DNA of 64,000 nucleotides from Paraphysomonas bandaiensis. Taxonomy: Eukaryota > Protista > Chrysophyceae. The notes beneath the pieces were generated by a model that was not told the origin of the DNA, searched no databases, and was given only the letters and a program-made list of their open reading frames with translations. How positions within the stretch are numbered: the first letter of the stretch is position 1; each line of letters opens with the position of its first letter. Positions 21,101-64,000 of this stretch are shown one piece after another. Position numbers and translations under genes: made by a program. The stretch covers positions 1 to 64,000 of the forward strand of contig CBFFRP010000433.1 in NCBI GenBank assembly GCA_965644295.1. Direction: 5' to 3'.

Positions 21101-22289
21101 TTGGATTCCATAGTGAATCTATTGTCCCACTCGTAGTTTCCAAGCTATTTGCATCACTTGTGGCGTCCGGAACACAAGAGAATATATCTTCCACAACCTT
21201 CTGCGTCCGACTTAAGTCAATGTCTCCTACGACGTATAGAATCGCATTGCTGGGTTGATACGTTCTATTTTTCAGCTCCTCTAAGTCCTCCACACTACAT
21301 GAGCGGATTATGTCTAGCTGACCTATTGGAAAACGTTTACAGAGAATATTCTCCTTGTGTAATTCAGCCAAAGAATTGAGATAGAGCCGGCGCTGTAGGT
21401 TGTTCACAGCTGAAGCTTCAGAAAGTACGGCGGCTTTCTCCCGCTCCAAACGTCCTTCCTCAATATTAGCTCTAAACACTCTAGATATTGCCTCGCAGAC
21501 TCTACGGAGCAGGTTGTTACTATTCGGAGCAACTAACGGACATGACGCAAAAAACACGGAATGGTGAAAGTCTGTGAAAGCATTGGTAGTACAATCCAAT
21601 CCTCCCAAGTTTTGTCGTCCCAAACCACCCATATATGCTACGTGTTCCAGCAAGTGGCTCATGCCACGTTGATCATCTCTCTCACAAGCTGATCCACCTA
21701 ATATCTCAAGGTAAATATCGACTGTGTTAGAAGGATACGGATTCTTCAATAACTTAAACTTCATCCCGTTAGTTAGAGTGCCTTCTCTTAAGTCTTTATG
21801 GGGCAGTATATCACTATTAGATGAGCCTATAGCACTATTAAATGAGCCTATAGCACTATTAGAGGAGCCTATAGCACTATTAGATGAGCCTATAGCACTA
21901 TTAAATGAGCCTATAGCACTATTAAATGAGCCTATAGCACTATTAAATGAGCCTATAGCACTATTAAAGGAGCCTATAGCGCTATTAGAGGAGCTTATAG
22001 CGCTATTAAAGGGGCCTATAGCGCTATTAGATGAGCCTATAGCACTATTAGAAGAGCCTATAGCACTATTAGAGGAGCCAATAGCACTATTAAAGGAGCC
22101 TATAGCACTATTAGAAGAGCCTATAGCACTATTAGAGGGGCCTATAGCACTATTAAAGGAGCCTATAGCACCACTATAGCCCATAGAACGAGGAGACGTC
22201 TTGTGTAGTCTCATAATTCGTGGTATTTTCCAATTTGACTGTGCAGGAGACATAAGTATAATACATATGAGCCATACCAACCCCCTCAT
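18109..22289 (-). CDS. M16 zinc metallopeptidase, stromal processing peptidase-like, with signal peptide (multi-exon)
   Basis: Inverted HXXEH (HLLEH), GSACERDDQRG, TNAFTDFHHSVF, EREKAAVLSE, RFPIG and a second-half motif RRLFEIVREERGLCYDA. Hydrophobic N-terminus. Confidence 0.88.
21812..22170. repeat. In-frame 21-bp coding tandem repeat (about 17 units, SAIGS[S/F]N)
   Basis: ATAGCACTATTA(G/A)A(T/G)GAGCCT units inside the M16 N-terminal region. Confidence 0.95.
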
Positions 22290-22487: not shown

Positions 22488-22627
22488 CATACATACATAC
22501 ATACATACATACATACATACATACATACATACATACATACATACATACATACATACATACATACATACATACATACATACATACATACATACATACATAC
22601 ATACATACATACATACATACATACATA
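22488..22627 (+). repeat. (CATA)n microsatellite, about 35 units, left target flank of transposon copy 1
   Basis: Perfect CATA array ending in TA immediately before the TIR. Confidence 0.98.
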
Positions 22628-22874
22628 CTGTACGTTTCTGTCAACTTTTATCCACGCACTCGTTTTTCTGTAAAATGTGGAAGGTACCGTACTCAAGCCC
22701 GCACCATAATGGTGTGGAACTATATAAGTGGTGATGATGAGTGACCAGTGGTATGTATGGTGTTGCTGGTGAGTAATAGATCCAGGGAGGTGGGTGTTGA
22801 AGGAGGAGCTCTCTCATCACAGCATGGTATCATACATACAGAACATAATAACAGCGAGAACATATCATAGTAGC

Positions 22875-23514
22875 ATGGAATCAACTACCACGGAATCAAC
22901 TACCACGGAATCAACTACCACGGAATCAACTACCACGGAATCAACTACCACAGGGGGCATTAGAAAAGTCGGTGATGGGGAAACCAAAAATCGTAACTCC
23001 TCTGCGTTAGCTCAGTTTGCGAAGTACTTGGAGATGCGGTTCGACGGGAAGAAGAGGTATAAGGAACTCATAGACAGTGATATAAATGTAGAACTATTTC
23101 AATGTTTCGGTGGCTTTTTGATCGATCACGCCGTCCATGGAACAACGAAGAAGCCTTTGACCCTAGGTACTGCTTGGCAGTATTTGTCAGACACGAAGAC
23201 TGCGCTGACGAAGCGATTTAAAAGAAATGAGTTATTAAGCAGCTCCAATGAGCTGTGGTACAAAGATGTGAGAGCGGCAGTATCAAAGCATATTATCAAG
23301 CGGTGTATCGCACAAGGAGTGCGTATATCAGAGAAAACAAGTCCAGTGGGGAAAGAACTAATGAAGCGCATAGGTGAATACATTATACATCGGGCATCTG
23401 ATTTCTCCGGTAAGTGGACATACTTCACATATCTATGATTTACTGTATGCTAATAAACTTTATTTAGAAGTGAAGAAGTATTCATTGTACAATCTCTATT
23501 TGGTTTTTCACATG
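22875..23514 (+). pseudogene. Truncated tyrosine-recombinase-like gene (N-terminal core-binding region), copy 1
   Basis: LFQCFGGFL...PLTLGTAWQYLSDTKTAL...WYKDVR...KRCI...EKTSPVGKELMKRIGEYI resembles, from recall, the N-terminal part of stramenopile/oomycete Crypton-like YR proteins. There is a GT-AG intron at 23410-23467, and the reading is cut off after VFHM. No R-H-R-Y catalytic residues are visible. Confidence 0.55.
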
Positions 23515-23727
23515 TTATCACCTATCATTCAAGCACTCATTAACGTGTATCTGCTGCATATGGCTGCCTCGTCATATTACTATATACATATACTCGATGC
23601 ATGTGATATGATGCACTATGCTATGATGCACTCTGCTGATTGGATCACTCGATGGGCGCACTTGCTGTGCGGCCTTTGTGTAAAAACAAGGGTGTGGGAT
23701 CCCGCACCTGCGGTGCGGGCTAAATAA

Positions 23728-23881
23728 TTTTTCCACAAAAACACTCTCTCCACACCCATTCCGACGACTCTCCAATTCTGACACGAGCATTCCACAAGCA
23801 TTCCATTCTACCCCTGGCGGACTCAAATTATACCCACAACTCCATTACACTGTACAATATGTAACAATATGGCTGCAGCTC
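23728..23881 (+). promoter_or_regulatory. Internal 154-bp inverted repeat (partner 26880-27033) holding the upstream region and first codons of both transposon genes
   Basis: 153/154 identity to the reverse complement of 26880-27033. It ends in ATGGCTGCAGCTC, so both ORFs start MAAA, and it contains repeated CATTCC motifs. The promoter role is inferred. Confidence 0.85.
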
Positions 23882-24825
23882 CTGTATTGGATCTTTCTGA
23901 AGACTTCATTTATGATCATCCGGTGTTTCGAATTGATCACAGACTTGTTGAGCATGAGCCTGTTGAGGCAGAGGAAGGAATATCACAACATGGTTTGTCT
24001 AGGCATCAATATACAGTATTGTTTTGGTACAAATGTTGTTTTAAGGATACCACTCTGCTTGAATGCGCAGAGTTTCTGAGAATTGTTTGCAACGTGACTG
24101 TGAGCCGATCCACAGTGTGCAGAGCACTCCTCCGACTTGGTTTCAAGAAAAAGCATATGAAGTACATCGCCAAGTATCTTGACGAGAATGATAGAGTGGC
24201 ATTTTGGGTCAATCCGCCTGATCATTCACTGCGACCGGGTGTGCTTGGGGTTTATTATCGGGACATTGTGGACCTAGACGAAAGCGGCTTTTACGTCTCC
24301 AATTCACGGCGTGTCTGTGGTCACTCTCTTGGGAGCACCTCAAGCAGTTCTATTGGAAACAAAGCCCGCATGCTGCCCCACTACTCATTGCTAGTTGCTA
24401 TCGACGCTCGCAAAGGTGTGATCAACAACATATTTTATCCACATGGCACAACTTCGGAGGTATTCTACCACTTTGTTGTGTACCTGTTAATTCCCAGTCT
24501 TGAGGGTACTGGGAGACGTGTCATTACAATGGATCGCTTGAGTGCTCATTTTGGAGTTGTGGTCAAAGCTCTAACGGATGCTGGACATTATGTTGTCTTT
24601 CGTCCTGCTTCGTCCCCTACCTTTGCACCAGTGGAATGGGTATTCAGTTACGTGGACAAGTTTCTTCAAGAGCATAGTCCACAAGTCACGCCCAATTCAT
24701 TAAAGTTTTGGTTAAGGACGGCTTTGGATACAATTAGTAGGTTTGACGTCAAACAGTATATGGCAGCTGCACACTTTTATGTCCCGACGTATCCGTACAC
24801 ACCTTACCGCGGTGAACAATCATAG
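23869..24825 (+). CDS. IS630/Tc1-like DDE transposase (318 aa, DD33E)
   Basis: HTH TLLECAEFL..VSRSTVCRALLRLG. Catalytic motifs DLDESGF, MDRLSAH and SPTFAPVEW. Confidence 0.92.
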   Translation: MAAAPVLDLSEDFIYDHPVFRIDHRLVEHEPVEAEEGISQHGLSRHQYTVLFWYKCCFKDTTLLECAEFLRIVCNVTVSRSTVCRALLRLGFKKKHMKYIAKYLDENDRVAFWVNPPDHSLRPGVLGVYYRDIVDLDESGFYVSNSRRVCGHSLGSTSSSSIGNKARMLPHYSLLVAIDARKGVINNIFYPHGTTSEVFYHFVVYLLIPSLEGTGRRVITMDRLSAHFGVVVKALTDAGHYVVFRPASSPTFAPVEWVFSYVDKFLQEHSPQVTPNSLKFWLRTALDTISRFDVKQYMAAAHFYVPTYPYTPYRGEQS

Positions 24826-25351
24826 GGGTGCTATGTGGTTGTAGTGCACGTTGTGACTGCGCTGCACTTAGTATTTATTAATCTGGTTATTTATTCTTAA
24901 CTATTCTAAATTATTATTCTTAAGTAATTTGGAACAGTATATTGCAATACCTTGCAAATGATATTAATCTGTTTAATATATTATTAGCTATATGTCGGTG
25001 GAATGCTTTTCACTTTTCACATTGTAATTATATGATATGTTACTAGTTTCATACGAAATTGAAAGCGCAGTGCTCACGGCAATAGTGATGAGAGTAAGCT
25101 TGTGTAATTTGGGCTCAAAATGAGTCCATTAAAAATTTGGGTGAATGTGTGATTATTACACAGTTCTAGTGATGACATAATATGATTAATAATTAATACA
25201 TTAATTAACAATAATAAAATTTATATAAAACTTCTTGACAACGATTGAATAATAATAACAGCGAAAAGCAATAATAATAAAAGGCTATATCTGGAATCAG
25301 CAGGCTATAATAAGAAAACAAACTAATAAGAAAAGACACAATGCTAAGGGT

Positions 25352-26892
25352 CTACTCCGGGAAAGTGCCATCTGAAGTGGGCTCCAGCTTCAGCTCATTC
25401 AAATCATGAACTAAATCAGGCCTCAACACAACCACCACCGCATTGACAGCAGCCACACAACCTTTCAAGTCCATCTCTGTATCGTGACTGTACGCGTTAT
25501 TTGGCGACAGTGGAGCCGACACTGGATGTAGCAGGGAAAAATTCTGTCCGCAAGCCGCTTGTTTTCTGAGACACTGATGGTGAGGAGTCGTGCGATTGTT
25601 TCTTTGCAGTCCTCATATAACACCTGGGCCTCTCTTCCTATATTTAAAGCAACAAAGTGAGCGTACAACTGTTGTCTGAAGAATGTCAGGAAAGTCACAG
25701 TCTCCTCACGGGCCTGGAGTTCAACTGCACTCAGCTCAGGGGCACTGGTTGGAGCACAACCGTTCTCCTCCATGCGGCGTCTTTTGGCAGCCAACCCATC
25801 GTCTGCATTAGGAATGTCTGTAACTCCCTCCACATATTCCGGTGGAGCCGAAGCAACCGCGCGCACAGATGCGTCGTCCAGTGCCTTTCGTTGCTCCTCT
25901 GTTAATAGGCGCACAGCATTATGTCGGGAAATGGTTGCAATCAAAGACTTAATCGGAACATCCATATCAATGGCCGCCTCAAGATTCTTCATGGTTTCAA
26001 CTAATCGGTAGGTGGCATGGGGATGAAGTAAAAAAGATCGTTGGTCCGTCTGGTCTTTCTGGTGTTCTTCCCGAACTCTGGACATAACTGCATCTGATGC
26101 CCCGCAACGCTCAAGAAATCCAGGTGCTTGGCGCTCCAACTCTGACAGCACAATGTATCCATCCGGCTCTTGCAGGAGTTTATTCAAATGAATTAGAGCA
26201 AAGTTATTGACCTCAAAAGACGCTCTAGTGCTGTTCATTCGAGTCTGCTCGGCCAGTGCATTCATGTAAATCTGTCGCCGCTTCTTATCGTACTCCGAGA
26301 TGACTTCAGCATGCTGTGGATACTTAGGGTAGGGACAATCCGACCACGGATCAGGCTGAATCCTAAACTCAACACTATGGGGCGCCACATTGCATACGGG
26401 ACAGCTACACTTCACTTTAACAATTAAATCACAACCCTTGCACCTGCCCATTGGAGGTATGAATGTGGTGGCGTTGCTGATGGGGCAGTCGTGCCTTAAT
26501 GCTGCTTGCAACTCCGCACTCGACATGCACACAGGACAACGAGTGCACTCCAAGCGATCATCTTTACTTGCTTTTTTCATCTCTGCGGCTTTGCAGTAGA
26601 ACACGTCGTCCCTTTCTTCGTCATTTGTTATTGGTAGCCGTCGAACATCTTTCTTTGCGCGCACGTGTTTCAGGAATCCCTTCCAGATGGTATAATGATG
26701 AAGACACCCAGGACACCTCACACCATCTTGTGGTGGATTTCTTGTGTTCGATTTGAACCTTTCCTGCCCACCGTGAAGTACGGTGTGTTCTGGAACAACA
26801 TCGCGGAGTGATGGGAGGTGAGCGGCCACCAAATTCTCGGAAGGAGCAAACACGAATATATCGCCACCATCGTGGTGATGAGCTGCAGCCAT
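25352..26892 (-). CDS. Transposon-borne Cys/His-rich orphan protein, copy 1 (1-bp frameshift near 25540)
   Basis: Nearly identical to 31312-32853, but A5 instead of A6 truncates the ORF at 25465. CPGC..H, CxxC clusters and an AKRRR NLS-like motif. Confidence 0.8.
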
Positions 26893-27068
26893 ATTGTTAC
26901 ATATCGTACAGTGTAATGGAGTTGTGGGTATAATTTGAGTCCGCCAGGGGTAGAATGGAATGCTTGTGGAATGCTCGTGTCAGAATTGGAGAGTCGTCGG
27001 AATGGGTGTGGAGAGAGTGTTTTTGTGGAAAAACGAGTGCGTGGATAAAAGTTGACAGAAACGTACAG

Positions 27069-27084
27069 TACATACATACATACA

Positions 27085-27118
<34 letters not shown>
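27069..27118 (+). repeat. (TACA)n spacer between the two transposon copies
   Basis: 50-bp array starting and ending in TA. Confidence 0.97.
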
Positions 27119-27365
27119 CTGTACGTTTCTGTCAACTTTTATCCACGCACTCGTTTTTCTGTAAAATGTGGAAGGTACCGTACTCAAGCCCGCACCATAA
27201 TGGTGTGGAACTATATAAGTGGTGATGATGAGTGACCAGTGGTATGTATGGTGTTGCTGGTGAGTAATAGATCCAGGGAGGTGGGTGTTGAAGGAGGAGC
27301 TCTCTCATCACAGCATGGTATCATACATACAGAACATAATAACAGCGAGAACATATCATAGTAGC

Positions 27366-28187
27366 ATGGAATCAACTACCACGGAATCAACTACCACGGA
27401 ATCAACTACCACGGAATCAACTACCACAGGGGGCATTAGAAAAGTCGGTGATGGGGAAACCAAAAATCGTAACTCCTCTGCGTTAGCTCAGTTTGCGAAG
27501 TACTTGGAGATGCGGTTCGACGGGAAGAAGAGGTATAAGGAACTCATAGACAGTGATATAAATGTAGAACTATTTCAATGTTTCGGTGGCTTTTTGATCG
27601 ATCACGCCGTCCATGGAACAACGAAGAAGCCTTTGACCCTAGGTACTGCTTGGCAGTATTTGTCAGACACGAAGACTGCGCTGACGAAGCGATTTAAAAG
27701 AAATGAGTTATTAAGCAGCTCCAATGAGCTGTGGTACAAAGATGTGAGAGCGGCAGTATCAAAGCATATTATCAAGCGGTGTATCGCACAAGGAGTGCGT
27801 ATATCAGAGAAAACAAGTCCAGTGGGGAAAGAACTAATGAAGCGCATAGGTGAATACATTATACATCGGGCATCTGATTTCTCCGGTAAGTGGACATACT
27901 TCACATATCTATGATTTACTGTATACCCTATGGTAGACAACGTCAACAAACAGAAAAAACTAAATCGAGTATTGACTAAAGGACTCGGCCTATTGTACGA
28001 TGACGAGAAACGTTTTCTTGATGAGCCGAAACCCTGTATGGCAAGTCAGTCTACTTCGTACAGAGAATGGAAGAGTAATTTAAAATGCATAGCTGAAAAG
28101 GTTGAATTGCGTGTTATTGTTGATTTATTTGGTCAGGAAAATTACGACAAGTTTCACCCCAAAAAAAAGCCTCTAAGAAATACATAA
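27366..28187 (+). pseudogene. Internally deleted tyrosine-recombinase-like gene, copy 2 (N-terminal exon plus probable C-terminal fragment 27930-28187)
   Basis: Same exon 1 as copy 1 (4 versus 5 ESTTT repeats). It diverges inside the intron at 27925 and continues into an 85-aa coding fragment absent from copy 1. Confidence 0.5.
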
Positions 28188-28264
28188 ACAGTATATATGA
28201 TGCAATGAGTGCACGAAGGGACAGTGATGGTAACATTATTCCAAGGACAAAGAAAAGGAAACTT

Positions 28265-29190
28265 CAGTCTGATGTTAGTAATCTGTAGAATGCCAATATA
28301 TGTATTCATTTATAACCACTCCATCAACTTTTTATAATGTACCCTTATAATTAATGATTCATTAGTAATTGGAATACATCGTATCATTATTTACAGAGCA
28401 TACAACAGTATAATCAACCATTACAGCGTTCAGCATTTTATTATTCGACACAGTCTGATGTTAGTAATCTGTAGAATGCCTATATGTATTCATTTATAAC
28501 CACTCCATCAACTTTTTATAATGTACCCTTATAATTAATGATTCATTAGTAATTGGAATACATCGTATCATTATTTACAGAGCATACAACAGTATAATCA
28601 ACCATTACAGCGTGCAGCATTTTATTATTCGACACAGTCTGATGTTAGTAATCTGTAGAATGCCTATATGTATTCATTTATAACCACTCCATCAACTTTT
28701 TATACTGTACCCTTATAATTAATGATTCATTAGTAATTGGAATACATCGTATCATTATTTACAGAGCATACAACAGTATAATCAACCATCACAGCGTTCA
28801 GCATTTTATTATTCCACACCGTTCAGAATTCTTATCACATACAGCCATACTGCATACCCTTACACAACATGACACATATTCACTGCAAGATGGAACAGGG
28901 GCAGCCGGGCGCTTGTGTCGCTTAGGCATCCCTCTTGCACCGGTAAGTATAAACGTCATTGCGCCTACAACAGCATAATAAACCATCACAGCCTTCAGCA
29001 TTTTATTATTCCACACCGTTCAGAATTCTTATCACATACAGCCATACTGCATACCCTTACACAACATGACACATATTCACTGCAAGATGGTACAGGGGCA
29101 GCCGGGCGCTTGTGTCGCTTAGGCATCCCTCTTGCACCGGTAAGTATAAACGTCATTGCGCCTACAACAGCATAATAAACCATGACAACA
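28265..29190. repeat. Tandem arrays inside the YR-like module: 3 x about 185 bp, then 2 x 198 bp
   Basis: CAGTCTGATGTTAGTAATCTG at 28265, 28451 and 28635. TTCAGCATTTTATTATTCCACACCG at 28797 and 28995. Confidence 0.92.
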
Positions 29191-29828
29191 TTCAGCATAT
29201 CATATACCATCACACAACATAGTGCATGCATGATATACAGCCTTCTATTCCTTCAAATGTACCACTTCTCATCTCTCTACATACCTGACACTTTAAATAG
29301 GATGATGGGAGCATGATGCTCCCACCTGGAATTCAATCATTGATATCCATATCAAATCACTTCATACCATAATATACAGCCCTTCACAGTTCCTCTCCAT
29401 ACAGCCTTATAAACCTCGTCCAGTAACTGCATATCTCATCTCACAGTTTCATGAAATAAGATGGTAGCAACATGTTATCACCTATCATTCAAGCACTCAT
29501 TAACGTGTATCTGCTGCATATGGCTGCCTCGTCATATTACTATATACATATACTCGATGCATGTGATATGATGCACTATGCTATGATGCACTCTGCTGAT
29601 TGGATCACTCGATGGGCGCACTTGCTGTGCGGCCTTTGTGTAAAAACAAGGGTGCGGGATCCCGCACCTGCGGTGCGGGCTAAATAATTTTTCCACAAAA
29701 ACACTCTCTCCACACCCATTCCGACGACTCTCCAATTCTGACACGAGCATTCCACAAGCATTCCATTCTACCCCTGGCGGACTCAAATTATACCCACAAC
29801 TCCATTACACTGTACAATATGTAACAAT

Positions 29829-30785
29829 ATGGCTGCAGCTCCTGTATTGGATCTTTCTGAAGACTTCATTTATGATCATCCGGTGTTTCGAATTGATCAC
29901 AGACTTGTTGAGCATGAGCCTGTTGAGGCAGAGGAAGGAATATCACAACATGGTTTGTCTAGGCATCAATATACAGTATTGTTTTGGTACAAATGTTGTT
30001 TTAAGGATACCACTCTGCTTGAATGCGCAGAGTTTCTGAGAATTGTTTGCAACGTGACTGTGAGCCGATCCACAGTGTGCAGAGCACTCCTCCGACTTGG
30101 TTTCAAGAAAAAGCATATGAAGTACATCGCCAAGTATCTTGACGAGAATGATAGAGTGGCATTTTGGGTCAATCCGCCTGATCATTCACTGCGACCGGGT
30201 GTGCTTGGGGTTTATTATCGGGACATTGTGGACCTAGACGAAAGCGGCTTTTACGTCTCCAATTCACGGCGTGTCTGTGGTCACTCTCTTGGGAGCACCT
30301 CAAGCAGTTCTATTGGAAACAAAGCCCGCATGCTGCCCCACTACTCATTGCTAGTTGCTATCGACGCTCGCAAAGGTGTGATCAACAACATATTTTATCC
30401 ACATGGCACAACTTCGGAGGTATTCTACCACTTTGTTGTGTACCTGTTAATTCCCAGTCTTGAGGGTACTGGGAGACGTGTCATTACAATGGATCGCTTG
30501 AGTGCTCATTTTGGAGTTGTGGTCAAAGCTCTAACGGATGCTGGACATTATGTTGTCTTTCGTCCTGCTTCGTCCCCTACCTTTGCACCAGTGGAATGGG
30601 TATTCAGTTACGTGGACAAGTTTCTTCAAGAGCATAGTCCACAAGTCACGCCCAATTCATTAAAGTTTTGGTTAAGGACGGCTTTGGATACAATTAGTAG
30701 GTTTGACGTCAAACAGTATATGGCAGCTGCACACTTTTATGTCCCGACGTATCCGTACACACCTTACCGCGGTGAACAATCATAG
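29829..30785 (+). CDS. IS630/Tc1-like DDE transposase, copy 2
   Basis: Protein identical to 23869-24825. Confidence 0.92.
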   Translation: MAAAPVLDLSEDFIYDHPVFRIDHRLVEHEPVEAEEGISQHGLSRHQYTVLFWYKCCFKDTTLLECAEFLRIVCNVTVSRSTVCRALLRLGFKKKHMKYIAKYLDENDRVAFWVNPPDHSLRPGVLGVYYRDIVDLDESGFYVSNSRRVCGHSLGSTSSSSIGNKARMLPHYSLLVAIDARKGVINNIFYPHGTTSEVFYHFVVYLLIPSLEGTGRRVITMDRLSAHFGVVVKALTDAGHYVVFRPASSPTFAPVEWVFSYVDKFLQEHSPQVTPNSLKFWLRTALDTISRFDVKQYMAAAHFYVPTYPYTPYRGEQS

Positions 30786-31311
30786 GGGTGCTATGTGGTT
30801 GTAGTGCACGTTGTGACTGCGCTGCACTTAGTATTTATTAATCTGGTTATTTATTCTTAACTATTCTAAATTATTATTCTTAAGTAATTTGGAACAGTAT
30901 ATTGCAATACCTTGCAAATGATATTAATCTGTTTAATATATTATTAGCTATATGTCGGTGGAATGCTTTTCACTTTTCACATTGTAATTATATGATATGT
31001 TACTAGTTTCATACGAAATTGAAAGCGCAGTGCTCACGGCAATAGTGATGAGAGTAAGCTTGTGTAATTTGGGCTCAAAATGAGTCCATTAAAAATTTGG
31101 GTGAATGTGTGATTATTACACAGTTCTAGTGATGACATAATATGATTAATAATTAATACATTAATTAACAATAATAAAATTTATATAAAACTTCTTGACA
31201 ACGATTGAATAATAATAACAGCGAAAAGCAATAATAATAAAAGGCTATATCTGGAATCAGCAGGCTATAATAAGAAAACAAACTAATAAGAAAAGACACA
31301 ATGCTAAGGGT

Positions 31312-32853
31312 CTACTCCGGGAAAGTGCCATCTGAAGTGGGCTCCAGCTTCAGCTCATTCAAATCATGAACTAAATCAGGCCTCAACACAACCACCACCG
31401 CATTGACAGCAGCCACACAACCTTTCAAGTCCATCTCTGTATCGTGACTGTACGCGTTATTTGGCGACAGTGGAGCCGACACTGGATGTAGCAGGGAAAA
31501 AATTCTGTCCGCAAGCCGCTTGTTTTCTGAGACACTGATGGTGAGGAGTCGTGCGATTGTTTCTTTGCAGTCCTCATATAACACCTGGGCCTCTCTTCCT
31601 ATATTTAAAGCAACAAAGTGAGCGTACAACTGTTGTCTGAAGAATGTCAGGAAAGTCACAGTCTCCTCACGGGCCTGGAGTTCAACTGCACTCAGCTCAG
31701 GGGCACTGGTTGGAGCACAACCGTTCTCCTCCATGCGGCGTCTTTTGGCAGCCAACCCATCGTCTGCATTAGGAATGTCTGTAACTCCCTCCACATATTC
31801 CGGTGGAGCCGAAGCAACCGCGCGCACAGATGCGTCGTCCAGTGCCTTTCGTTGCTCCTCTGTTAATAGGCGCACAGCATTATGTCGGGAAATGGTTGCA
31901 ATCAAAGACTTAATCGGAACATCCATATCAATGGCCGCCTCAAGATTCTTCATGGTTTCAACTAATCGGTAGGTGGCATGGGGATGAAGTAAAAAAGATC
32001 GTTGGTCCGTCTGGTCTTTCTGGTGTTCTTCCCGAACTCTGGACATAACTGCATCTGATGCCCCGCAACGCTCAAGAAATCCAGGTGCTTGGCGCTCCAA
32101 CTCTGACAGCACAATGTATCCATCCGGCTCTTGCAGGAGTTTATTCAAATGAATTAGAGCAAAGTTATTGACCTCAAAAGACGCTCTAGTGCTGTTCATT
32201 CGAGTCTGCTCGGCCAGTGCATTCATGTAAATCTGTCGCCGCTTCTTATCGTACTCCGAGATGACTTCAGCATGCTGTGGATACTTAGGGTAGGGACAAT
32301 CCGACCACGGATCAGGCTGAATCCTAAACTCAACACTATGGGGCGCCACATTGCATACGGGACAGCTACACTTCACTTTAACAATTAAATCACAACCCTT
32401 GCACCTGCCCATTGGAGGTATGAATGTGGTGGCGTTGCTGATGGGGCAGTCGTGCCTTAATGCTGCTTGCAACTCCGCACTCGACATGCACACAGGACAA
32501 CGAGTGCACTCCAAGCGATCATCTTTACTTGCTTTTTTCATCTCTGCGGCTTTGCAGTAGAACACGTCGTCCCTTTCTTCGTCATTTGTTATTGGTAGCC
32601 GTCGAACATCTTTCTTTGCGCGCACGTGTTTCAGGAATCCCTTCCAGATGGTATAATGATGAAGACACCCAGGACACCTCACACCATCTTGTGGTGGATT
32701 TCTTGTGTTCCATTTGAACCTTTCCTGCCCACCGTGAAGTACGGTGTGTTCTGGAACAACATCGCGGAGTGATGGGAGGTGAGCGGCCACCAAATTCTCG
32801 GAAGGAGCAAACACGAATATATCGCCACCATCGTGGTGATGAGCTGCAGCCAT
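31312..32853 (-). CDS. Transposon-borne Cys/His-rich orphan protein (513 aa, intact)
   Basis: Long intronless ORF with CPGCLHHYTIWKGFLKHVR (C2H2-like), CTRCPVC, CKGC..CSCPVC and an AKRRR basic motif. Confidence 0.85.
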   Translation of the reverse strand: MAAAHHHDGGDIFVFAPSENLVAAHLPSLRDVVPEHTVLHGGQERFKWNTRNPPQDGVRCPGCLHHYTIWKGFLKHVRAKKDVRRLPITNDEERDDVFYCKAAEMKKASKDDRLECTRCPVCMSSAELQAALRHDCPISNATTFIPPMGRCKGCDLIVKVKCSCPVCNVAPHSVEFRIQPDPWSDCPYPKYPQHAEVISEYDKKRRQIYMNALAEQTRMNSTRASFEVNNFALIHLNKLLQEPDGYIVLSELERQAPGFLERCGASDAVMSRVREEHQKDQTDQRSFLLHPHATYRLVETMKNLEAAIDMDVPIKSLIATISRHNAVRLLTEEQRKALDDASVRAVASAPPEYVEGVTDIPNADDGLAAKRRRMEENGCAPTSAPELSAVELQAREETVTFLTFFRQQLYAHFVALNIGREAQVLYEDCKETIARLLTISVSENKRLADRIFSLLHPVSAPLSPNNAYSHDTEMDLKGCVAAVNAVVVVLRPDLVHDLNELKLEPTSDGTFPE

Positions 32854-33029
32854 ATTGTTACATATCGTACAGTGTAATGGAGTTGTGGGTATAATTTGAG
32901 TCCGCCAGGGGTAGAATGGAATGCTTGTGGAATGCTCGTGTCAGAATTGGAGAGTCGTCGGAATGGGTGTGGAGAGAGTGTTTTTGTGGAAAAACGAGTG
33001 CGTGGATAAAAGTTGACAGAAACGTACAG

Positions 33030-34365
33030 TATGTATGTATGTATGTATGTATGTATGTATGTATGTATGTATGTATGTATGTATGTATGTATGTATGTAT
33101 GTATGTATGTATGTATGTATGTATGTATGTATGTATGTATGTATGTATGTATGTATGTATGTATGTATGTATGTATGTATGTATGTATGTATGTATGTAT
33201 GTATGTATGTATGTATGTATGTATGTATGTATGTATGTATGTATGTATGTATGTATGTATGTATGTATGTATGTATGTATGTATGTATGTATGTATGTAT
33301 GTATGTATGTATGTATGTATGTATGTATGTATGTATGTATGTATGTATGTATGTATGTATGTATGTATGTATGTATGTATGTATGTATGTATGTATGTAT
33401 GTATGTATGTATGTATGTATGTATGTATGTATGTATGTATGTATGTATGTATGTATGTATGTATGTATGTATGTATGTATGTATGTATGTATGTATGTAT
33501 GTATGTATGTATGTATGTATGTATGTATGTATGTATGTATGTATGTATGTATGTATGTATGTATGTATGTATGTATGTATGTATGTATGTATGTATGTAT
33601 GTATGTATGTATGTATGTATGTATGTATGTATGTATGTATGTATGTATGTATGTATGTATGTATGTATGTATGTATGTATGTATGTATGTATGTATGTAT
33701 GTATGTATGTATGTATGTATGTATGTATGTATGTATGTATGTATGTATGTATGTATGTATGTATGTATGTATGTATGTATGTATGTATGTATGTATGTAT
33801 GTATGTATGTATGTATGTATGTATGTATGTATGTATGTATGTATGTATGTATGTATGTATGTATGTATGTATGTATGTATGTATGTATGTATGTATGTAT
33901 GTATGTATGTATGTATGTATGTATGTATGTATGTATGTATGTATGTATGTATGTATGTATGTATGTATGTATGTATGTATGTATGTATGTATGTATGTAT
34001 GTATGTATGTATGTATGTATGTATGTATGTATGTATGTATGTATGTATGTATGTATGTATGTATGTATGTATGTATGTATGTATGTATGTATGTATGTAT
34101 GTATGTATGTATGTATGTATGTATGTATGTATGTATGTATGTATGTATGTATGTATGTATGTATGTATGTATGTATGTATGTATGTATGTATGTATGTAT
34201 GTATGTATGTATGTATGTATGTATGTATGTATGTATGTATGTATGTATGTATGTATGTATGTATGTATGTATGTATGTATGTATGTATGTATGTATGTAT
34301 GTATGTATGTATGTATGTATGTATGTATGTATGTATGTATGTATGTATGTATGTATGTATGTATG
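33030..34365 (+). repeat. (TATG)n perfect microsatellite, about 334 units
   Basis: Uninterrupted array directly abutting the right TIR of copy 2. Confidence 0.98.
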
Positions 34366-34530: not shown

Positions 34531-35769
34531 ATGCGTGTATGTTTCTTATGTTGCAACCCAAGCTCAGCAACAATTGTTCCTATATCCACTGGAAGGATCA
34601 TGATTATGGGTGGTGGGATGTATGCTGCAAACACAGTATTAACAGAAGATGAATTAAGATTTGTAAAAAGAGTTACAGAAGTGATGAAATATCAACCTCA
34701 ATGTTCATGTACATCATTCTGTTTTCCATGTTTGGAGAATAGAGCTGCACTTAGAGAGATTCAATCATTAAAGTCTGAAGCACAGAGAAATGGACTTGAT
34801 TTTTCTGTCAAGTATTATGGTAGAATAATTGGATTTGTGGCAATGGATTCGAAATCTCCTCTCAGGGCTGATCCGCCAGTCAAGTTGAAAGATGTATACT
34901 CATCATCAGGGTGGCATTTTTCTGGTATGCCAACTGCAGAACATGCTGAAATATTAATGAACTTGAACCAGACACTACAACCACATTGCGAGTTTTGCTT
35001 GTTGAATTTAGAACATATTGTATTTTCTCCTCCGAGCTGTGGAATGCTTTGCGCGATTTTGAGTCCCTGTAGGGGTTGGTTATGTCAGACTCTGATTGGT
35101 GCTCTTTCCAAGCTTCTAGCAATGGCAACAGCACCTTGTTGGAGTTGTTGCTCTGCGCATAGAGTTGCAAAGATGAAACCAGTTGCAAAGGACAAAGGTG
35201 TAATAATCAATGAAACATCTTTATGTGGTGCTGTGTACGCTCTTGGCGCTGAATACAGTGGTTACCCTTATCAACTGGTCGAGGTACCCAAAAATGATGG
35301 AATGCATCAACCAGTTGTTCTCCCTGAGTCGACCAGAAATGATTCTTCTATGGCTTCTGCTGGTTATGCTATGGTCTCAACTCCCAATAACATGCCTCCT
35401 GGTGGTTACACCATGGCCTCAACTCCCAATAACATGCCTCCTGGTGGTTACGCCATGGTCCCAACTCCCAATAACATGCCTCCTGGTGGTTACGCCATGG
35501 TCCCAACTCCCAATAACATGCCTCCTGGTGGTTACGCCATGGCCTCAACTCCCAATAACATGCCTCCTGGTGGTTACGCCATGGTCCCAACTCCCAATAA
35601 CATGCCTCCTGGTGGTTACGCCATGGTCCCAACTCCCAATAACATGCCTCCTGGTGGTTACGCCATGGCCTCAACTCCCAATAACATGCCTCCTGGTGGT
35701 AGTGCTACCAATAGTGCATCTCCTGGAGCTTGTACGGAGGTTCCTACTACAAATTCTATGGCACGTTAA
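34531..35769 (+). CDS. Cys-rich hypothetical protein (possibly PLAC8-like) with C-terminal 13-aa repeats; true start probably about 34607
   Basis: 412-aa ORF with CTSFCFPC and CWSCCSAHRVA motifs and TPNNMPPGGYAMV repeats. Confidence 0.65.
   Translation: MRVCFLCCNPSSATIVPISTGRIMIMGGGMYAANTVLTEDELRFVKRVTEVMKYQPQCSCTSFCFPCLENRAALREIQSLKSEAQRNGLDFSVKYYGRIIGFVAMDSKSPLRADPPVKLKDVYSSSGWHFSGMPTAEHAEILMNLNQTLQPHCEFCLLNLEHIVFSPPSCGMLCAILSPCRGWLCQTLIGALSKLLAMATAPCWSCCSAHRVAKMKPVAKDKGVIINETSLCGAVYALGAEYSGYPYQLVEVPKNDGMHQPVVLPESTRNDSSMASAGYAMVSTPNNMPPGGYTMASTPNNMPPGGYAMVPTPNNMPPGGYAMVPTPNNMPPGGYAMASTPNNMPPGGYAMVPTPNNMPPGGYAMVPTPNNMPPGGYAMASTPNNMPPGGSATNSASPGACTEVPTTNSMAR
35360..35700. repeat. In-frame 39-bp coding tandem repeat (about 9 units)
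   Basis: CAACTCCCAATAACATGCCTCCTGGTGGTTACGCCATGG units. Confidence 0.95.
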
Positions 35770-48263: not shown

Positions 48264-50222
48264 TCAGATTTCAGATGATACCTCCGAGTAGTACAAGCGA
48301 GCAACACTGTAACTACTATGAGACTCCGGATATCCGCTACCTTCAAACAGTTCCAAAGAGCGTTGGAGCATGATTAGACCTTTTTCCTTCCTCTCGCCTT
48401 TTATGAGAGCTGTAGCATAGTTCAAATATAAAACCGCCATAGAGTGATGCTCTTTACCACCATACCACCACATCGATAATTGTATACTCTTTTCGAAATG
48501 CATAATAGCATCATTGTATTGCTCCAATTTTGCATACACTACACCCAGCAACTCCTGTATATTCACCAAGACTTGGTTACCGTAGGATATAGAAAGAGCC
48601 TTGTAAATGGTGAAAGCTTTTAAGAAGTATTCCAGCGAATCGAAGTTGTGATTCAAATACATATTAAGTAAACCCTTGTTGGTGTACAATAAACCCATAA
48701 CGCTTCCCTTCGATGTTGGTGAGTCTTCCCATATATCTAAAAGTTCATCTATTGTACTTTCTATTTGTTTGCTATACTTCAAAATATTTTCCTCTTTCTC
48801 TGCAATCATCAGCCCTATCCCGATTTCCATATTCACTGTTAGAAGCTGCCTCCACTCTGTATTGTCACTTATCCCTTCAGCAATGTATACCGAGCGTAAC
48901 CTGCTTGTATATGAGCTAACTGCCTGAAACCCTTTGCGAAATACTTGCAATGCCTGGCTATGGTGGCGACGATCTGATTTAAACTGAAATACTGCGAATA
49001 GTCTGAATAGAGTTATCGCAAAGAACCGAAGCTCATTTATGTTTATTTTCTCTTGCTTAGCTGCCTTCATTCCAAGTAGACGTATTGATGCTATTATTTT
49101 CGCATAATATACATCTAAGAAAAGTGTGCTCAAACTTTCACGAGAAGTTGATGACAACTTCAGAGACCAATCGTTACCCCTATTTGCCCATTCTGTGCAC
49201 AATTCTCTCCAAGCTCCGCGAAAAACAGTCTCTCGATATTGGTGTCGCTCTCCAGCTAAATGAAGTACAGGAGAATCTGACCGCCTATAAAGGAACGATG
49301 GGAAATCTGAATTCATCAAACCAGGTGGCAGGACATGAATATGAGACGAAAAATTGGAATCGAATCCTGCAATACCAAAATGAGATAGATTCAACGCAGT
49401 GTCATGAGATATAAGATCGAACACTGTCTGTTCATTATACAAGGATCGATTCCGATAGTTCCAATACAACTGTAGAAATTGTCGTGACCATTCTGTATTT
49501 CGTACAAGTATCGTTCCAGTATTAACTCGATTAAAGCTTCCCGCAGACATAAATATACGTGATGTAAGTACTTTATATGAATCAGCTGATATATATATAT
49601 CTGCATATGGATTACTATGTATAATCTTCTCAATTCTAAATTGCATATCAGTTATAATAACATCAGCATCTAACCATAATATATAATCATAGTGTTTAGC
49701 CCATTTATATAATGGATTCAAACTATCTATAAGTAATTTAATCTTATTCCATCGTATATCAGTTTCATTTGATTGATAAATCTGATCTGTATATATATGA
49801 TAAGAATAATTGTTATATTCACAATAGATTTCATTAATAGCTAATGAATATATAGAATAGTTGATGATATGTGTATCTGTATATGTTATGATAGCTATCC
49901 TCTTATCTCTATTACTATACGTACCACTACTATATGTATCATTATTATATGTATCATTACTACTACAAGTATTATTATTACTATAGAAATCTTCAGTTAA
50001 ATACCTTTCTAAGATACGTTCTGTGTTCCTCCAAGCACTATTGATCGTGACTTCATATAGATCACTTGGAGTATTAATTGTCATATTGCAGAGATCAGTA
50101 TGAATAATGCATTGAATATTATGAAAGTGAAATGAAAACCAATAAAAAAGATGAAAACCCCTGAAAAGTGTGTTAAATATATTCATAGGTATCACAAAAT
50201 CGACTTTTCGTAGCCTATTCAC
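48264..50222 (-). CDS. GT34 (GMA12/MNN10-like) glycosyltransferase with C-terminal TPRs; start probably 50186
   Basis: WNKIKLL, YDYILWLDAD (DxD), NTGTILVRNTEWSRQFL and NEQ. TPR-like helices at the C-terminus. Confidence 0.82.
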   Translation of the reverse strand: MNRLRKVDFVIPMNIFNTLFRGFHLFYWFSFHFHNIQCIIHTDLCNMTINTPSDLYEVTINSAWRNTERILERYLTEDFYSNNNTCSSNDTYNNDTYSSGTYSNRDKRIAIITYTDTHIINYSIYSLAINEIYCEYNNYSYHIYTDQIYQSNETDIRWNKIKLLIDSLNPLYKWAKHYDYILWLDADVIITDMQFRIEKIIHSNPYADIYISADSYKVLTSRIFMSAGSFNRVNTGTILVRNTEWSRQFLQLYWNYRNRSLYNEQTVFDLISHDTALNLSHFGIAGFDSNFSSHIHVLPPGLMNSDFPSFLYRRSDSPVLHLAGERHQYRETVFRGAWRELCTEWANRGNDWSLKLSSTSRESLSTLFLDVYYAKIIASIRLLGMKAAKQEKININELRFFAITLFRLFAVFQFKSDRRHHSQALQVFRKGFQAVSSYTSRLRSVYIAEGISDNTEWRQLLTVNMEIGIGLMIAEKEENILKYSKQIESTIDELLDIWEDSPTSKGSVMGLLYTNKGLLNMYLNHNFDSLEYFLKAFTIYKALSISYGNQVLVNIQELLGVVYAKLEQYNDAIMHFEKSIQLSMWWYGGKEHHSMAVLYLNYATALIKGERKEKGLIMLQRSLELFEGSGYPESHSSYSVARLYYSEVSSEI

Positions 50223-50285: not shown

Positions 50286-50904
50286 TGTATGTATGTATGT
50301 ATGTATGTATGTATGTATGTATGTATGTATGTATGTATGTATGTATGTATGTATGTATGTATGTATGTATGTATGTATGTATGTATGTATGTATGTATGT
50401 ATGTATGTATGTATGTATGTATGTATGTATGTATGTATGTATGTATGTATGTATGTATGTATGTATGTATGTATGTATGTATGTATGTATGTATGTATGT
50501 ATGTATGTATGTATGTATGTATGTATGTATGTATGTATGTATGTATGTATGTATGTATGTATGTATGTATGTATGTATGTATGTATGTATGTATGTATGT
50601 ATGTATGTATGTATGTATGTATGTATGTTGTATGTATGTATGTATGTATGTATGTATGTATGTATGTATGTATGTATGTATGTATGTATGTATGTATGTA
50701 TGTATGTATGTATGTATGTATGTATGTATGTATGTATGTATGTATGTATGTATGTATGTATGTATGTATGTATGTATGTATGTATGTATGTATGTATGTA
50801 TGTATGTATGTATGTATGTATGTATGTATGTATGTATGTATGTATGTATGTATGTATGTATGTATGTATGTATGTATGTATGTATGTATGTATGTATATG
50901 TATG
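50286..50904 (+). repeat. (TATG)n microsatellite, about 150 units, one internal slip near 50629
   Basis: Directly visible; no transposon TIR adjacent. Confidence 0.98.
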
Positions 50905-62500: not shown

Positions 62501-64000
62501 TAGAAGATGTTCAGGTAATGACAAGGAATACGCCTGGATACACGGGATATACGGGAACGAGGGACGCTTCTAGTACCACTGATGGACGGAGTACGTCCAC
62601 TATCCCAGCACCTGAGAGCCATCAGGAGCAGCTAGTTAACCATGGTATTATTCAGGGAGCACCTGATGAAGATATGACTCAAGGAGTACTTGATGCAGAT
62701 GCAGCTCAGGGAGAACCTGATCGAGCAGTAAAACAGGGAGTACCTGAATATACTGATACTATAAATTCTAACAGTACTAATACCCTACAGAGAGTATCTA
62801 AAAGGGATGCAGAGAAACGTAAGCGTTTACGGAGGAGGCTAGCTAATGCTTCAGTGTTAGGAGAAATTAACATGATAGAGGTAATGGATGCCGATGTAAA
62901 TGTCATGGATTCAGAGGAGAGTACTGAGAATAAACACGTCCATGAACCGAACAGTTTTCTAGAGGCGGAGAGGTCCCCTCAAGCGGAAGAATGGAGAACA
63001 GCCAGACGAATAGAGAAGAAAGCTCTTTTACGAAGAGGCGTTTTGAAGATAGTACGTCGACCATCTGGGGTCAAATTAATCAGATGTAAGTATGTTCACA
63101 AACTCAAGCGTGACATACTAGGCAACATACAGAAGTATAAAGCTCGACTAGTCGCACTAGGAAATCTTCAGGAGAAAACTGAGGAGGAGCCATCTACATT
63201 TGCACCGGTTGTCAAAGGGATAACTATCAGGCTCGTGATTGCAATTGCTTTTATGTTCCATATGCATGTACACCAGCTTGATGTCAGTTCTGCATTTTGT
63301 TATGCAAATTTAGATGAAGATGTCTACATGTACCCACCTCCAGATGAGGAGCTCAGCAATGGATGGTGTTTTAAACTCATCAAAGCACTATATGGTTTAC
63401 GAGCCTCACCGCGTCAGTGGAATCGCCACATCGATAAATTCATAAAGTCAATGCAGTTTAGATCATGCGTGTTAGATACCTGCTTATATTATCGTTGGCA
63501 CCAAGGCAAACTTACGTTATTACTCCTGTATGTAGATGACATCATAATCGCATCTGTGGATTTTGAATTCCTTGTTTTTGTCAAGAACAAGTTCTGCCAA
63601 ACGTTTGAAATGAGGGACATGGGAGAGTGCCAAAGTTTCCTAAATATTCGAATCACGAGAGGCGAAGACTGGTTCAAACTAGATCAATCACAGTATGCGG
63701 AGAAAGTGATTCAGAAATTCAACCATGTCATGGGAAACAGTAGAAAGAATAAGGAAGCTCCGTTGCCATCAAATGCACAAGAACTACTAGCTGCAGAACG
63801 GGAACTTACATCAGAACAGGAGGACTGGGTCTCAAAATTTCCGTATCGTAGTATTATTGGAGCAATCCTGTATCTCGCACTCCACACAAGACCAGATCTC
63901 GCCTATGCAATCGGATTACTATCGAGATACAGCAGTAATCCTACATACGCATCGTGTCGTTTAGCTATTCATTTATTGAAATATTTGAGAGGCACCACCA
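59538..64000 (+). mobile_element. Ty1/Copia LTR retrotransposon (5' LTR 59538-59858, PBS from 59859; runs off the window)
   Basis: LTR followed by PBS TGGTAGCGAAT, then gag-PR-IN-RT order. Confidence 0.95.
59842..64000 (+). CDS. Copia Gag-Pol polyprotein (apparently a single open frame, 3' incomplete)
   Basis: Two CCHC-type knuckles, protease YIDTCCS, HRRMGH/CSIC, integrase SADV / HADGAGE / PEMNAVEER, RT KARLVA, QLDVSSAF and LYVDD. All checked motifs are in the same frame. Confidence 0.93.
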   Translation, partial: MVFSQYGSECGGEKEDRADVPWFDESNVEQWIEDFETFLMRKEQSEVALERPPEEEDFGIQPLNSLETKSYKEAVDKYWKANAIAYSYCREAVKRSPKALQKFHLKHKEFKAAEGRVNKFSAREMVSTLKSCFEGGTQNKISALLAQFGSFEMKPGETAKEYVLRFELLLRELQAHNQTVTEESKISRLKEGIISDEYDGLNYALYLMPDDVPYELLSKRIEQFDDTKYGRKIIEKKRKSTEELNHIEKPRKKERVSTKRKCTYCSKKGIIHNHNTEQCRKKKGETKGQRPGSKEYTGCRVCKSKNHRANECPRNSTGKTKKPQKSGKVFTFENIRRGGTESDSESEANMLYDCAVDIYDKSDTCCMIGTAEHYTYIDTCCSSSMFLMNDVTMLDTHMNTSKVINGSKKGSEIHITSVGSRGAWRDIEISDQINRCLCSGRKLNEMGYRFTVWYGIQIYDCNTGELVLEGPMKNGMTAVPTQQLLELPDVSTPSNCEVNLSDRTGEDELELLHRRMGHFNKGALTEAHRRMLFTGSNLQRKHLSKTALKKSCLCSICARSKITRVSFHTKEDTDVKPDISADVQVFLNTPARGDERYVIKLTHHPSRMFWVKGVNQRTKEEVIQFFREVFEGEIRQYKLRVDHYHADGAGELINQELRSYLRSQGCYKHTWSSTDSPEMNAVEERKFRTASEMALAMLLQSGLPVPFWLDAYHAARYTLIRLPTRTDRGYMSPYEYVTGQPPSLKYFRVWGCKTYILTPKADRRKDWDDKSKIGYLVGYSEDKVGYQVYLPATDKVITCVHILTDESIPSRTEEYYAEIDALRVRTAPRPKTVNDYQHLVKTFHIDDEDGLLYKTTRVVERKGVIVGYRSLVTAGRTHIEQKVPIHIEDVQVMTRNTPGYTGYTGTRDASSTTDGRSTSTIPAPESHQEQLVNHGIIQGAPDEDMTQGVLDADAAQGEPDRAVKQGVPEYTDTINSNSTNTLQRVSKRDAEKRKRLRRRLANASVLGEINMIEVMDADVNVMDSEESTENKHVHEPNSFLEAERSPQAEEWRTARRIEKKALLRRGVLKIVRRPSGVKLIRCKYVHKLKRDILGNIQKYKARLVALGNLQEKTEEEPSTFAPVVKGITIRLVIAIAFMFHMHVHQLDVSSAFCYANLDEDVYMYPPPDEELSNGWCFKLIKALYGLRASPRQWNRHIDKFIKSMQFRSCVLDTCLYYRWHQGKLTLLLLYVDDIIIASVDFEFLVFVKNKFCQTFEMRDMGECQSFLNIRITRGEDWFKLDQSQYAEKVIQKFNHVMGNSRKNKEAPLPSNAQELLAAERELTSEQEDWVSKFPYRSIIGAILYLALHTRPDLAYAIGLLSRYSSNPTYASCRLAIHLLKYLRGTT

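Follow-up and report, generated by a model that had tools for sequence, protein, structure and literature searches.

Most transposons of the Tc1/mariner type are single-gene elements. In the PIF/Harbinger superfamily, a DDE transposase is accompanied by a separately transcribed DNA-binding partner, which is Myb/SANT-like, and the target is TAA/TTA. Multi-gene members of Tc1/mariner have been described as TBE (Oxytricha) and Tec (Euplotes), whose extra open reading frames (ORFs) are under purifying selection and include one with zinc-finger features; they are defined by three ORFs, including a zinc-finger/kinase protein, and by telomeric repeats in their terminal inverted repeats (TIRs) (PMC4724952). 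Sequence-specific elements that dwell in microsatellites are, according to PMC3706591 and its references 3 and 4, almost only non-long-terminal-repeat retrotransposons, which move by target-primed reverse transcription and are essentially confined to their repeat. Here, a 64,000-nt stretch of the genome of Paraphysomonas bandaiensis (assembly GCA_965644295.1, contig CBFFRP010000433.1, positions 1 to 64,000; referred to as the window) was analysed, in which two same-orientation copies of a DNA transposon lie at arrays of the tetranucleotide repeat (CATA)n. Each copy carries a transposase gene and a second, convergent gene, referred to as the partner. The explanation that best accounts for the data, at a probability of about 65 % for the whole including target choice of the ordinary Tc1 type, is that the element belongs to the IS630/Tc1/mariner superfamily, carries two genes and was active recently, its host being a chrysophyte-like marine flagellate.

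Membership of the IS630/Tc1/mariner superfamily was established by the presence of a TA duplication, TIRs and a DDE_3 transposase, in agreement with the class proposed by a first-pass annotation made from the sequence alone. That annotation had also placed two near-identical copies in the window with the TA of CATA/TATG at their ends, and both its coordinates and its description of the junctions were exact: each copy starts with CTGTACG, ends with CGTACAG and has TA on either side, and all four ends adjoin the TA of a CATA/TATG array. When the 3.3-kb core was searched against the 62.6-Mb assembly to which the window belongs, 10 full-length cores with 99.3–100 % identity were identified. In seven of these copies (C2, C32, two in C78, C185, C297 and C388) the TIRs are unbroken at both ends and 189 bp long, giving a canonical element of 3,377 bp with a TA duplication (for example, C388:18538-21914) and TIRs that are 99 % complementary over 189 bp. 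The first-pass annotation had reported a TIR of 41 bp, the point at which the left TIR of both window copies is broken; it resumes at bp 36, with duplication of TTTTTC. A search with the terminal 29 nt, in which three mismatches were allowed, detected 23 termini, all of them perfect and none with one to three mismatches, while the reversed control detected none. TA was present on both sides of every two-ended copy, namely six outside arrays, the two window copies, the C2 copy and a coreless composite in C58. One-ended remnants were found within arrays in C111 and C259, a solo 53-bp end was found outside arrays in C2, and the terminus in C396 sits at a contig edge.

Both start codons are located inside the TIRs, and the transposase and the partner have their first four codons (MAAA) in common. 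In each TIR the start codon is at the inner edge, and the TIR would also carry a promoter, with one TIR serving the transposase and the other the convergent 513-aa protein. Within the TIR at 32841-33029, the terminal ACTGTACG is repeated approximately 160 bp inward and a motif ending CATTCC is present three times; these repeated motifs may be protein-binding sites.

The transposase matched DDE_3 (PF13358) with 34.3 bits against a cut-off of 28.6, and this domain was matched by eight of ten family members. The NCBIfam IS630 model (NF033545) aligned over approximately 220 residues with E-values down to 4e-17, below its equivalog cut-off. A candidate catalytic triad, D137/D222/E256, falls in three conserved motifs (DLDESG, MDRLSAH and PVEW), its members being 84 and 33 residues apart; the latter spacing is 34 in the Tc1 (DD34E) clade. 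One helix-turn-helix (HTH)-like stretch (VSRSTVCRAL) is conserved, with weak HTH Pfam matches in one relative only; the N-terminus of the window transposase is shortened and retains only a remnant of the first HTH. The DDE enzyme would transpose the element by a cut-and-paste mechanism. A diverged relative was observed at G000:C282:27980-29322, whose transposase protein is 91 % identical and lies in an open frame of 359 aa; no partner gene was detected beside it.

A word-indexed protein search with the partner found nothing, and homologues surfaced only in an exhaustive HMMER search of 1.84 billion representatives. This search gave 29 homologues (15 at E<=1e-10), three of which adjoin a related transposase, so that the partner is not the orphan gene that had been supposed in the first-pass annotation. 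Fourteen Cys/His residues between residues 60 and 172 are kept in at least 94 % of the sequences and are followed by a conserved helical region; the N-terminus is a candidate multi-zinc-type Cys/His domain. Neither a family nor a kinase or other domain was found by Pfam in the partner or its 29 relatives, and an atlas feature search gave only weak C2H2-like leads (<=0.88). Structure prediction, which had been proposed as a check on the 513-aa protein, gave a model but no convincing fold relative: AlphaFold reached a predicted local distance difference test score (pLDDT) of 84.9 with the partner alignment, single-sequence folding reached a pLDDT of 40, and a wide VIA search returned only generic helical-bundle matches over residues 383-502 with Z<=7.5.

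On three divergent contigs from metagenomes or runs, the partner lies convergent to the gene of a related transposase. Identities were 50 % for the transposase and 29 % for the partner on L053, 36 % and 28 % on L057, which has 30-nt inverted ends, and 41 % and 24 % on L059. The presence of the convergent pair on three such divergent contigs indicates that the two-gene layout is old and conserved in the family. Metagenome scans with the transposase profile for further loci detected only near-duplicates of L053. By comparison with the second protein of PIF/Harbinger, the partner could be an element-encoded cofactor acting, for example, in end binding, assembly or regulation. A bolder proposal, that the Cys/His partner defines an undescribed two-gene IS630/Tc1-type clade in marine protists and is possibly a required DNA-binding cofactor for the long TIRs or for promoter-gap (CATA)n, in the latter case biasing integration into the arrays, is improbable as it stands. 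A diverged homologue of the partner (39 % identity over residues 11-461) was observed at C169:238662-240606 in a stop-free 550-aa open frame, accompanied only by a convergent 39-aa transposase remnant 370 bp downstream. This locus represents either the decayed remains of an old element or a partner gene that was retained and is perhaps domesticated.

The young age of the element and its second, convergent Cys/His-rich gene, both of which had been recognised in the first-pass annotation, were confirmed. The cores of the two window copies (23728-27068 and 29688-33029) differ at only two positions, by a single substitution and by the loss of 1 bp from copy 1. The ten cores form three subfamilies with 99.3–99.5 % identity between and near identity within them: subfamily A (both window copies, C2 and C388), subfamily B (C297, C259 and C185) and subfamily C (C78a, C78b and C32). 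The changes that separate the subfamilies are mostly synonymous; in the transposase ORF there are five nucleotide substitutions, all of which are synonymous (5 of 5), and the protein is identical in 10 of 10 copies. An intact partner of 513 aa is encoded by eight of ten copies, whereas its frame is shifted in window copy 1 (475 aa) and C78b (296 aa); the 513-aa gene that had been ascribed to each window copy is thus present in copy 2 but not in copy 1. Matches to the element were listed from 12 studies, which include several strains and metagenomes. In a poly(A) marine metatranscriptome, two separate contigs with a gap between them covered 29812-30867 (transposase) and 31191-32870 (partner), while a DNA run gave a single contig across the whole interval including the gap. 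No spliced joints were found in the element, the one listed joint (30169 to 30582) being flagged as diverged sequence of the same length and not cut out. The RNA contigs fit two convergent, unspliced mRNAs.

The first-pass annotation had counted a tyrosine-recombinase-like module as part of the transposon. This module was found to be a separate repeat nested in the TIR, with at least 40 near-identical copies elsewhere and approximately 40 genome-wide occurrences of its 209-aa ORF. Elsewhere, at least 12 full copies and many partial ones match the insert in copy 2 at approximately 100 % identity, and none of these adjoins the ends of this transposon. The short variant carried by copy 1 matches the long form at 98 % identity over its first 779 bp, and the same short form was found at C35, C218, C162 and C456. 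The nested repeat has no TIRs and has a short direct repeat at its boundaries. Its right flank was TTTTTC wherever it was read (15 copies) and its left flank was a T-rich variant ending in TC (15 copies read), and this combination in every inspected copy suggests site-specific integration without TIRs. The tyrosine-recombinase catalytic domain is absent from the window inserts, for which Pfam gave only Phage_int_SAM_1 at E=0.25. A longer variant of approximately 3.85 kb was observed in C58 (L046:7437-9080, minus strand) with a 547-aa ORF. By language-model features this ORF is similar (0.90–0.97) to eukaryotic clusters, some of which contain NDC10_II, GCR1_C or Phage_integrase, the combination associated with Cryptons. 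The C58 variant is probably an autonomous Crypton-like element and the nested insert of the window probably an internally deleted one, the latter assigned by features and not firmly. Resemblance to Cryptons lies in the lack of TIRs and in the TTTTTC direct repeat at both boundaries; the difference is that no Pfam match was obtained even for the 547-aa ORF, which is itself missing from the window copies.

Two further arrangements of the nested repeat were observed. A stand-alone copy in C354 has the right flank TTTTTCCACAAAAAC, the 15 nt of which equal TIR positions 36-50, with unrelated sequence beyond. At C58:213319-218825, a 5.5-kb composite with two 41-bp transposon ends and no core lies in a (CATA)n array, its interior consisting only of Crypton-like insert sequences in inverted orientation. 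If this composite moved as a unit, 41 bp of TIR would be enough for mobilisation.

Placement of the element was assessed against the TA background of the genome. Four two-ended elements are in arrays (both window copies, the C2 copy and the C58 composite) and six are outside them (C388, C297, C185, C78a, C78b and C32), each of the latter with its own TA duplication. A perfect (CATA)10 pattern gave 127,451 matches, corresponding to 0.51–0.62 Mb or 0.8–1.0 % of the genome and, at a TA frequency of 0.089 per nt, to 2.3–2.7 % of all TA sites. The association with arrays over the plain TA background is real, both for two-ended elements (4 of 10, P=1.5e-4 at p=0.03) and for loci (3 of 9, P=2e-3). 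The first-pass proposal that the element targets (CATA)n therefore stands as far as enrichment is concerned and fails for the six full copies at non-array TA sites. A microsatellite-specific element would have all or nearly all copies in one repeat, whereas here 6 of 10 full copies and one solo end lie outside; the genome-wide tabulation of flanks against the TA background, which had been set beforehand as the test with random TA sites as the refuting outcome, thus went largely against the proposal.

The sites outside arrays have a context of their own. In 11 of 12 half-sites, counted manually, TA is preceded by a purine and followed by a pyrimidine, and runs of 9–11 nt in which purines and pyrimidines alternate contain four of the six sites, in comparison with 10 % of background TA sites (P=0.0013). 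The Tc1 consensus, as quoted from Korswagen et al. 1996 in PMC9635669, is CAYATATRTG, which is itself a perfect alternating run, and (CATA)n is the longest alternating purine/pyrimidine run that a genome can offer. Of the TA sites in alternating runs of 9 nt or more, 19–22 % are in arrays, and with such a share the observed 3 of 9 loci are as expected (P=0.26). This indicates that, with the consensus taken as quoted there, an ordinary Tc1-type preference fits better than dedicated targeting. The target rule would be a TA inside an alternating pyrimidine/purine stretch, recognised by the transposase itself in the manner of ordinary Tc1 elements; arrays, by supplying about a fifth or more of such sites, would capture approximately 40 % of insertions. 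The enrichment may be increased further by post-insertion selection and by exchange between arrays through recombination.

Dedicated targeting, in which the partner or the transposase recognises (CATA)n as a safe harbour and the copies outside represent leakage, would explain why 4 of 10 elements, or 5–6 of 12–13 termini-bearing loci, are in arrays against a TA background of approximately 2.5 %. The conserved Cys/His domain of the partner could bind DNA, and the partner is co-inherited with the transposase in relatives that are 36–50 % identical. However, the non-array majority has clean TA duplications and shares an alternating context that is explained by a transposase-intrinsic preference like that in the quoted Tc1 consensus, and the array share is no higher than this context predicts. 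Nothing links the partner to target choice, and the suggestion in the first-pass annotation that the accessory protein or the transposase selects microsatellites was not upheld; dedicated microsatellite targeting is unlikely. Hardly more probable is an explanation by survivorship, in which integration is broad over TA sites and only insertions in harmless DNA persist, with promoter-gap arrays forming a large share of such DNA in a gene-dense genome. The positions of the arrays upstream of genes, here at distances of approximately 200 bp and 165 bp from the ORFs on either side, agree with this, but identities of 99.3–100 % and perfect termini leave little time for purging and the sequence context of the non-array sites is not random. 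Furthermore, none of 10 inspected Crypton-like copies outside the TIR of this transposon is in an array, which indicates that arrays are no universal sink.

Recombination is the least probable of these explanations, although traces of it were evident. It would hold that array-embedded copies and interrupted ends were spread not by transposition but by gene conversion or ectopic exchange, with the arrays and the element providing the homology, and that the window pair could be a local duplication. In C111 an array, a 41-bp end and the insert are followed by unrelated DNA, and in C259 unrelated DNA is followed by the insert, the core and then an array. The C2 copy (C2:67071-70447) is the centre of an inverted duplication (G000:C2:64630-73768), whose arms share 1,811 bp of unique, non-array sequence at 99.9 % identity together with approximately 0.6 kb and 1.5 kb of array. 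Interrupted TIRs were counted manually at 6 of 11 ends of array-embedded elements and at 0 of 13 ends elsewhere (Fisher, approximately 0.003), and the same interrupted-TIR junction is shared by cores of subfamily A and subfamily B. A plausible source of the interrupted TIRs is gene conversion between copies embedded in arrays, which have long homology on both sides of the insert, and recurrent site-specific insertion is the alternative. An argument against recombination as an account of the element's placement is that the two window copies and the C58 composite all have TA at both ends, in the register that integration would produce. The window copies also differ in insert type (98 % versus 100 %), insert length (1,058 versus 2,527 bp), the number of a 15-bp repeat and the private 1-bp deletion of copy 1, and the pair is therefore neither an assembly echo nor a recent simple duplication; tandem duplication or misassembly, which the first-pass annotation had listed as possible refutations, is made unlikely by the same differences. 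A second close pair, at C78:164549-171388, consists of inverted copies 97 bp apart at non-array TA sites with separate TA duplications, which suggests local hopping.

Several points weigh against the reading preferred here, that of a recently active two-gene element with Tc1-type target choice. Only six non-array sites were available, the threshold of at least 9 nt for alternating runs was picked post hoc, and the background TA context was taken from approximately 95 kb of the genome. The enrichment in arrays could equally stem from selection after insertion, as arrays lie in promoter gaps, or from recombination between arrays, as rearrangement was seen at C111, C259 and C2. For the partner, searches with the pLDDT 84.9 model by Foldseek against the PDB and by shape against ESM-Atlas gave no match, and neither a fold nor a family match is available. 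DNA carry-over cannot be strictly excluded for the RNA-library contigs; their outer ends, at 29812 and 32870, match a repeat boundary in DNA contigs too, and they are therefore uninformative on transcription starts and leave the promoter role of the TIR putative.

With both copies removed, the site in the window reads (CATA)n-TA-(TATG)m, a perfect palindrome. The locus was probably a pre-existing divergent gene gap with mirrored arrays, (CATA)n followed by (TATG)n, into which one copy would have entered at or next to the array junction and the other 50 bp away inside the (CATA) arm. The unique flanks of the window are not inverted copies of each other, as tested for a palindrome, and the C2 locus is not an allele or duplicate of the window locus, since the unique flanks share nothing. 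At C2, the right arm of the inverted duplication ends at a further (CATA)n array (73775-74314), and at a distance of 1.3 kb on the left side is the solo 53-bp TIR end (63307-63359). Coordinates of the features of the window locus are given in Table 1.

Table 1. Features of the two transposon copies and their flanking arrays, in window positions
Feature	Position	Strand	Remarks
(CATA)35 array, left flank of copy 1	22488..22627		Target duplication formed by the last TA (22626-22627)
Copy 1 of the transposon	22628..27068	+	4,441 bp including nested insert; first base C, last base G
Outer 41 bp of left TIR, copy 1	22628..22668	+	Canonical positions 1-41
Nested repeat, short variant, copy 1	22670..23727	+	1,058 bp; 214-aa ORF; TTTTTC flanks; lacks a catalytic domain
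Inner 154 bp of left TIR, copy 1	23728..23881	+	Canonical positions 36-189; includes transposase ATG
Transposase ORF, copy 1	23869..24825	+	318 aa; protein identical to all other copies
Partner ORF, copy 1	25465..26892	-	475 aa; cut by 1-bp deletion
Right TIR, copy 1	26880..27068	-	189 bp, unbroken
Inter-copy spacer	27069..27118		TA, (CATA)11-12, TATA; includes a TA duplication for each copy
Copy 2 of the transposon	27119..33029	+	5,911 bp including nested insert; first base C, last base G
Outer 41 bp of left TIR, copy 2	27119..27159	+	
Nested repeat, long variant, copy 2	27161..29687	+	2,527 bp; TTTTTC flanks; 209-aa ORF; 184-bp and 197-bp tandem repeats
Inner 154 bp of left TIR, copy 2	29688..29841	+	
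Transposase ORF, copy 2	29829..30785	+	318 aa; DDE_3, candidate triad, one recognisable HTH
Partner gene, copy 2	31312..32853	-	513 aa; Cys/His N-terminal domain and helical C-terminal half
Right TIR, copy 2	32841..33029	-	189 bp; includes partner ATG
(TATG)334 array, right flank of copy 2	33030..34365		

The left-hand array lies upstream of an M16 peptidase ORF on the minus strand (ATG at 22289), at a distance of approximately 200 bp. The right-hand (TATG)334 array is opposite in polarity to those on the left and stops 165 bp upstream of a plus-strand ORF (34531-35769). Both of these ORFs contain in-frame tandem repeats, of a 21-bp unit x17 in the M16 peptidase ORF (21807-22171) and of a 42-bp unit x8 in ORF 34531-35769 (35350-35700). 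Another (TATG)n array of 0.6 kb (50288-50894) is found 66 bp from the start of a minus-strand glycosyltransferase/TPR ORF (48264-50222); its polarity is ambiguous, with no obvious fit to a rule of one orientation per gene direction.

Within the searchable library, no paper on transposons of this organism was found. In relation to the literature searched, novelty lies in the conserved family of Cys/His partners and in the location of the start codons within the TIRs, and the targeting claim is downgraded, the apparent homing to microsatellites being mostly explained, on present evidence, by ordinary Tc1-type site preference. The significance of the partner is that of a second protein with no known family or fold which is under selection and is co-inherited with the transposase at 24–50 % identity, and it is a candidate cofactor for the best-studied class of cut-and-paste transposons. 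A young and simple element, with ten cores, perfect ends and RNA-library contigs for both genes, in a genome of which approximately 1 % is a tetranucleotide repeat, provides a natural system in which sequence-context preference, selection and recombination could be separated as causes of transposon placement.

The element is similar to Tc1 of C. elegans and Tc1-like DD34E transposons in its TA duplication, its TIRs and its DDE_3-type D...D...E triad (33 residues from D to E), as well as in the close pairs of copies that suggest local hops and in its alternating pyrimidine/purine sites, for which the consensus in PMC9635669 is the comparison. It differs from them by its second conserved gene, by 189-bp TIRs containing both start codons and by the lack of a recognisable first HTH of the paired-like domain, and searches of PDB sequences with the transposase and with its profile gave no match, including to the solved Tc1/mariner transposases. 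With TBE and Tec it has in common the superfamily, a protist host and the possession of extra ORFs under purifying selection, one of them with zinc-finger features (PMC4724952); it is not a member of this group, since only two ORFs are present, a kinase domain is lacking and the TIR shows no telomere-like repeat. Like the microsatellite-dwelling elements, it has a substantial share of its copies inside one type of microsatellite, but it is a DNA transposon, with 60 % of the full copies outside the repeat. The working analogy for its two-gene plan is with PIF/Harbinger, which belongs to another superfamily and has another target, and in place of the Myb/SANT-like protein of that system the partner described here is Cys/His-rich and belongs to no family.

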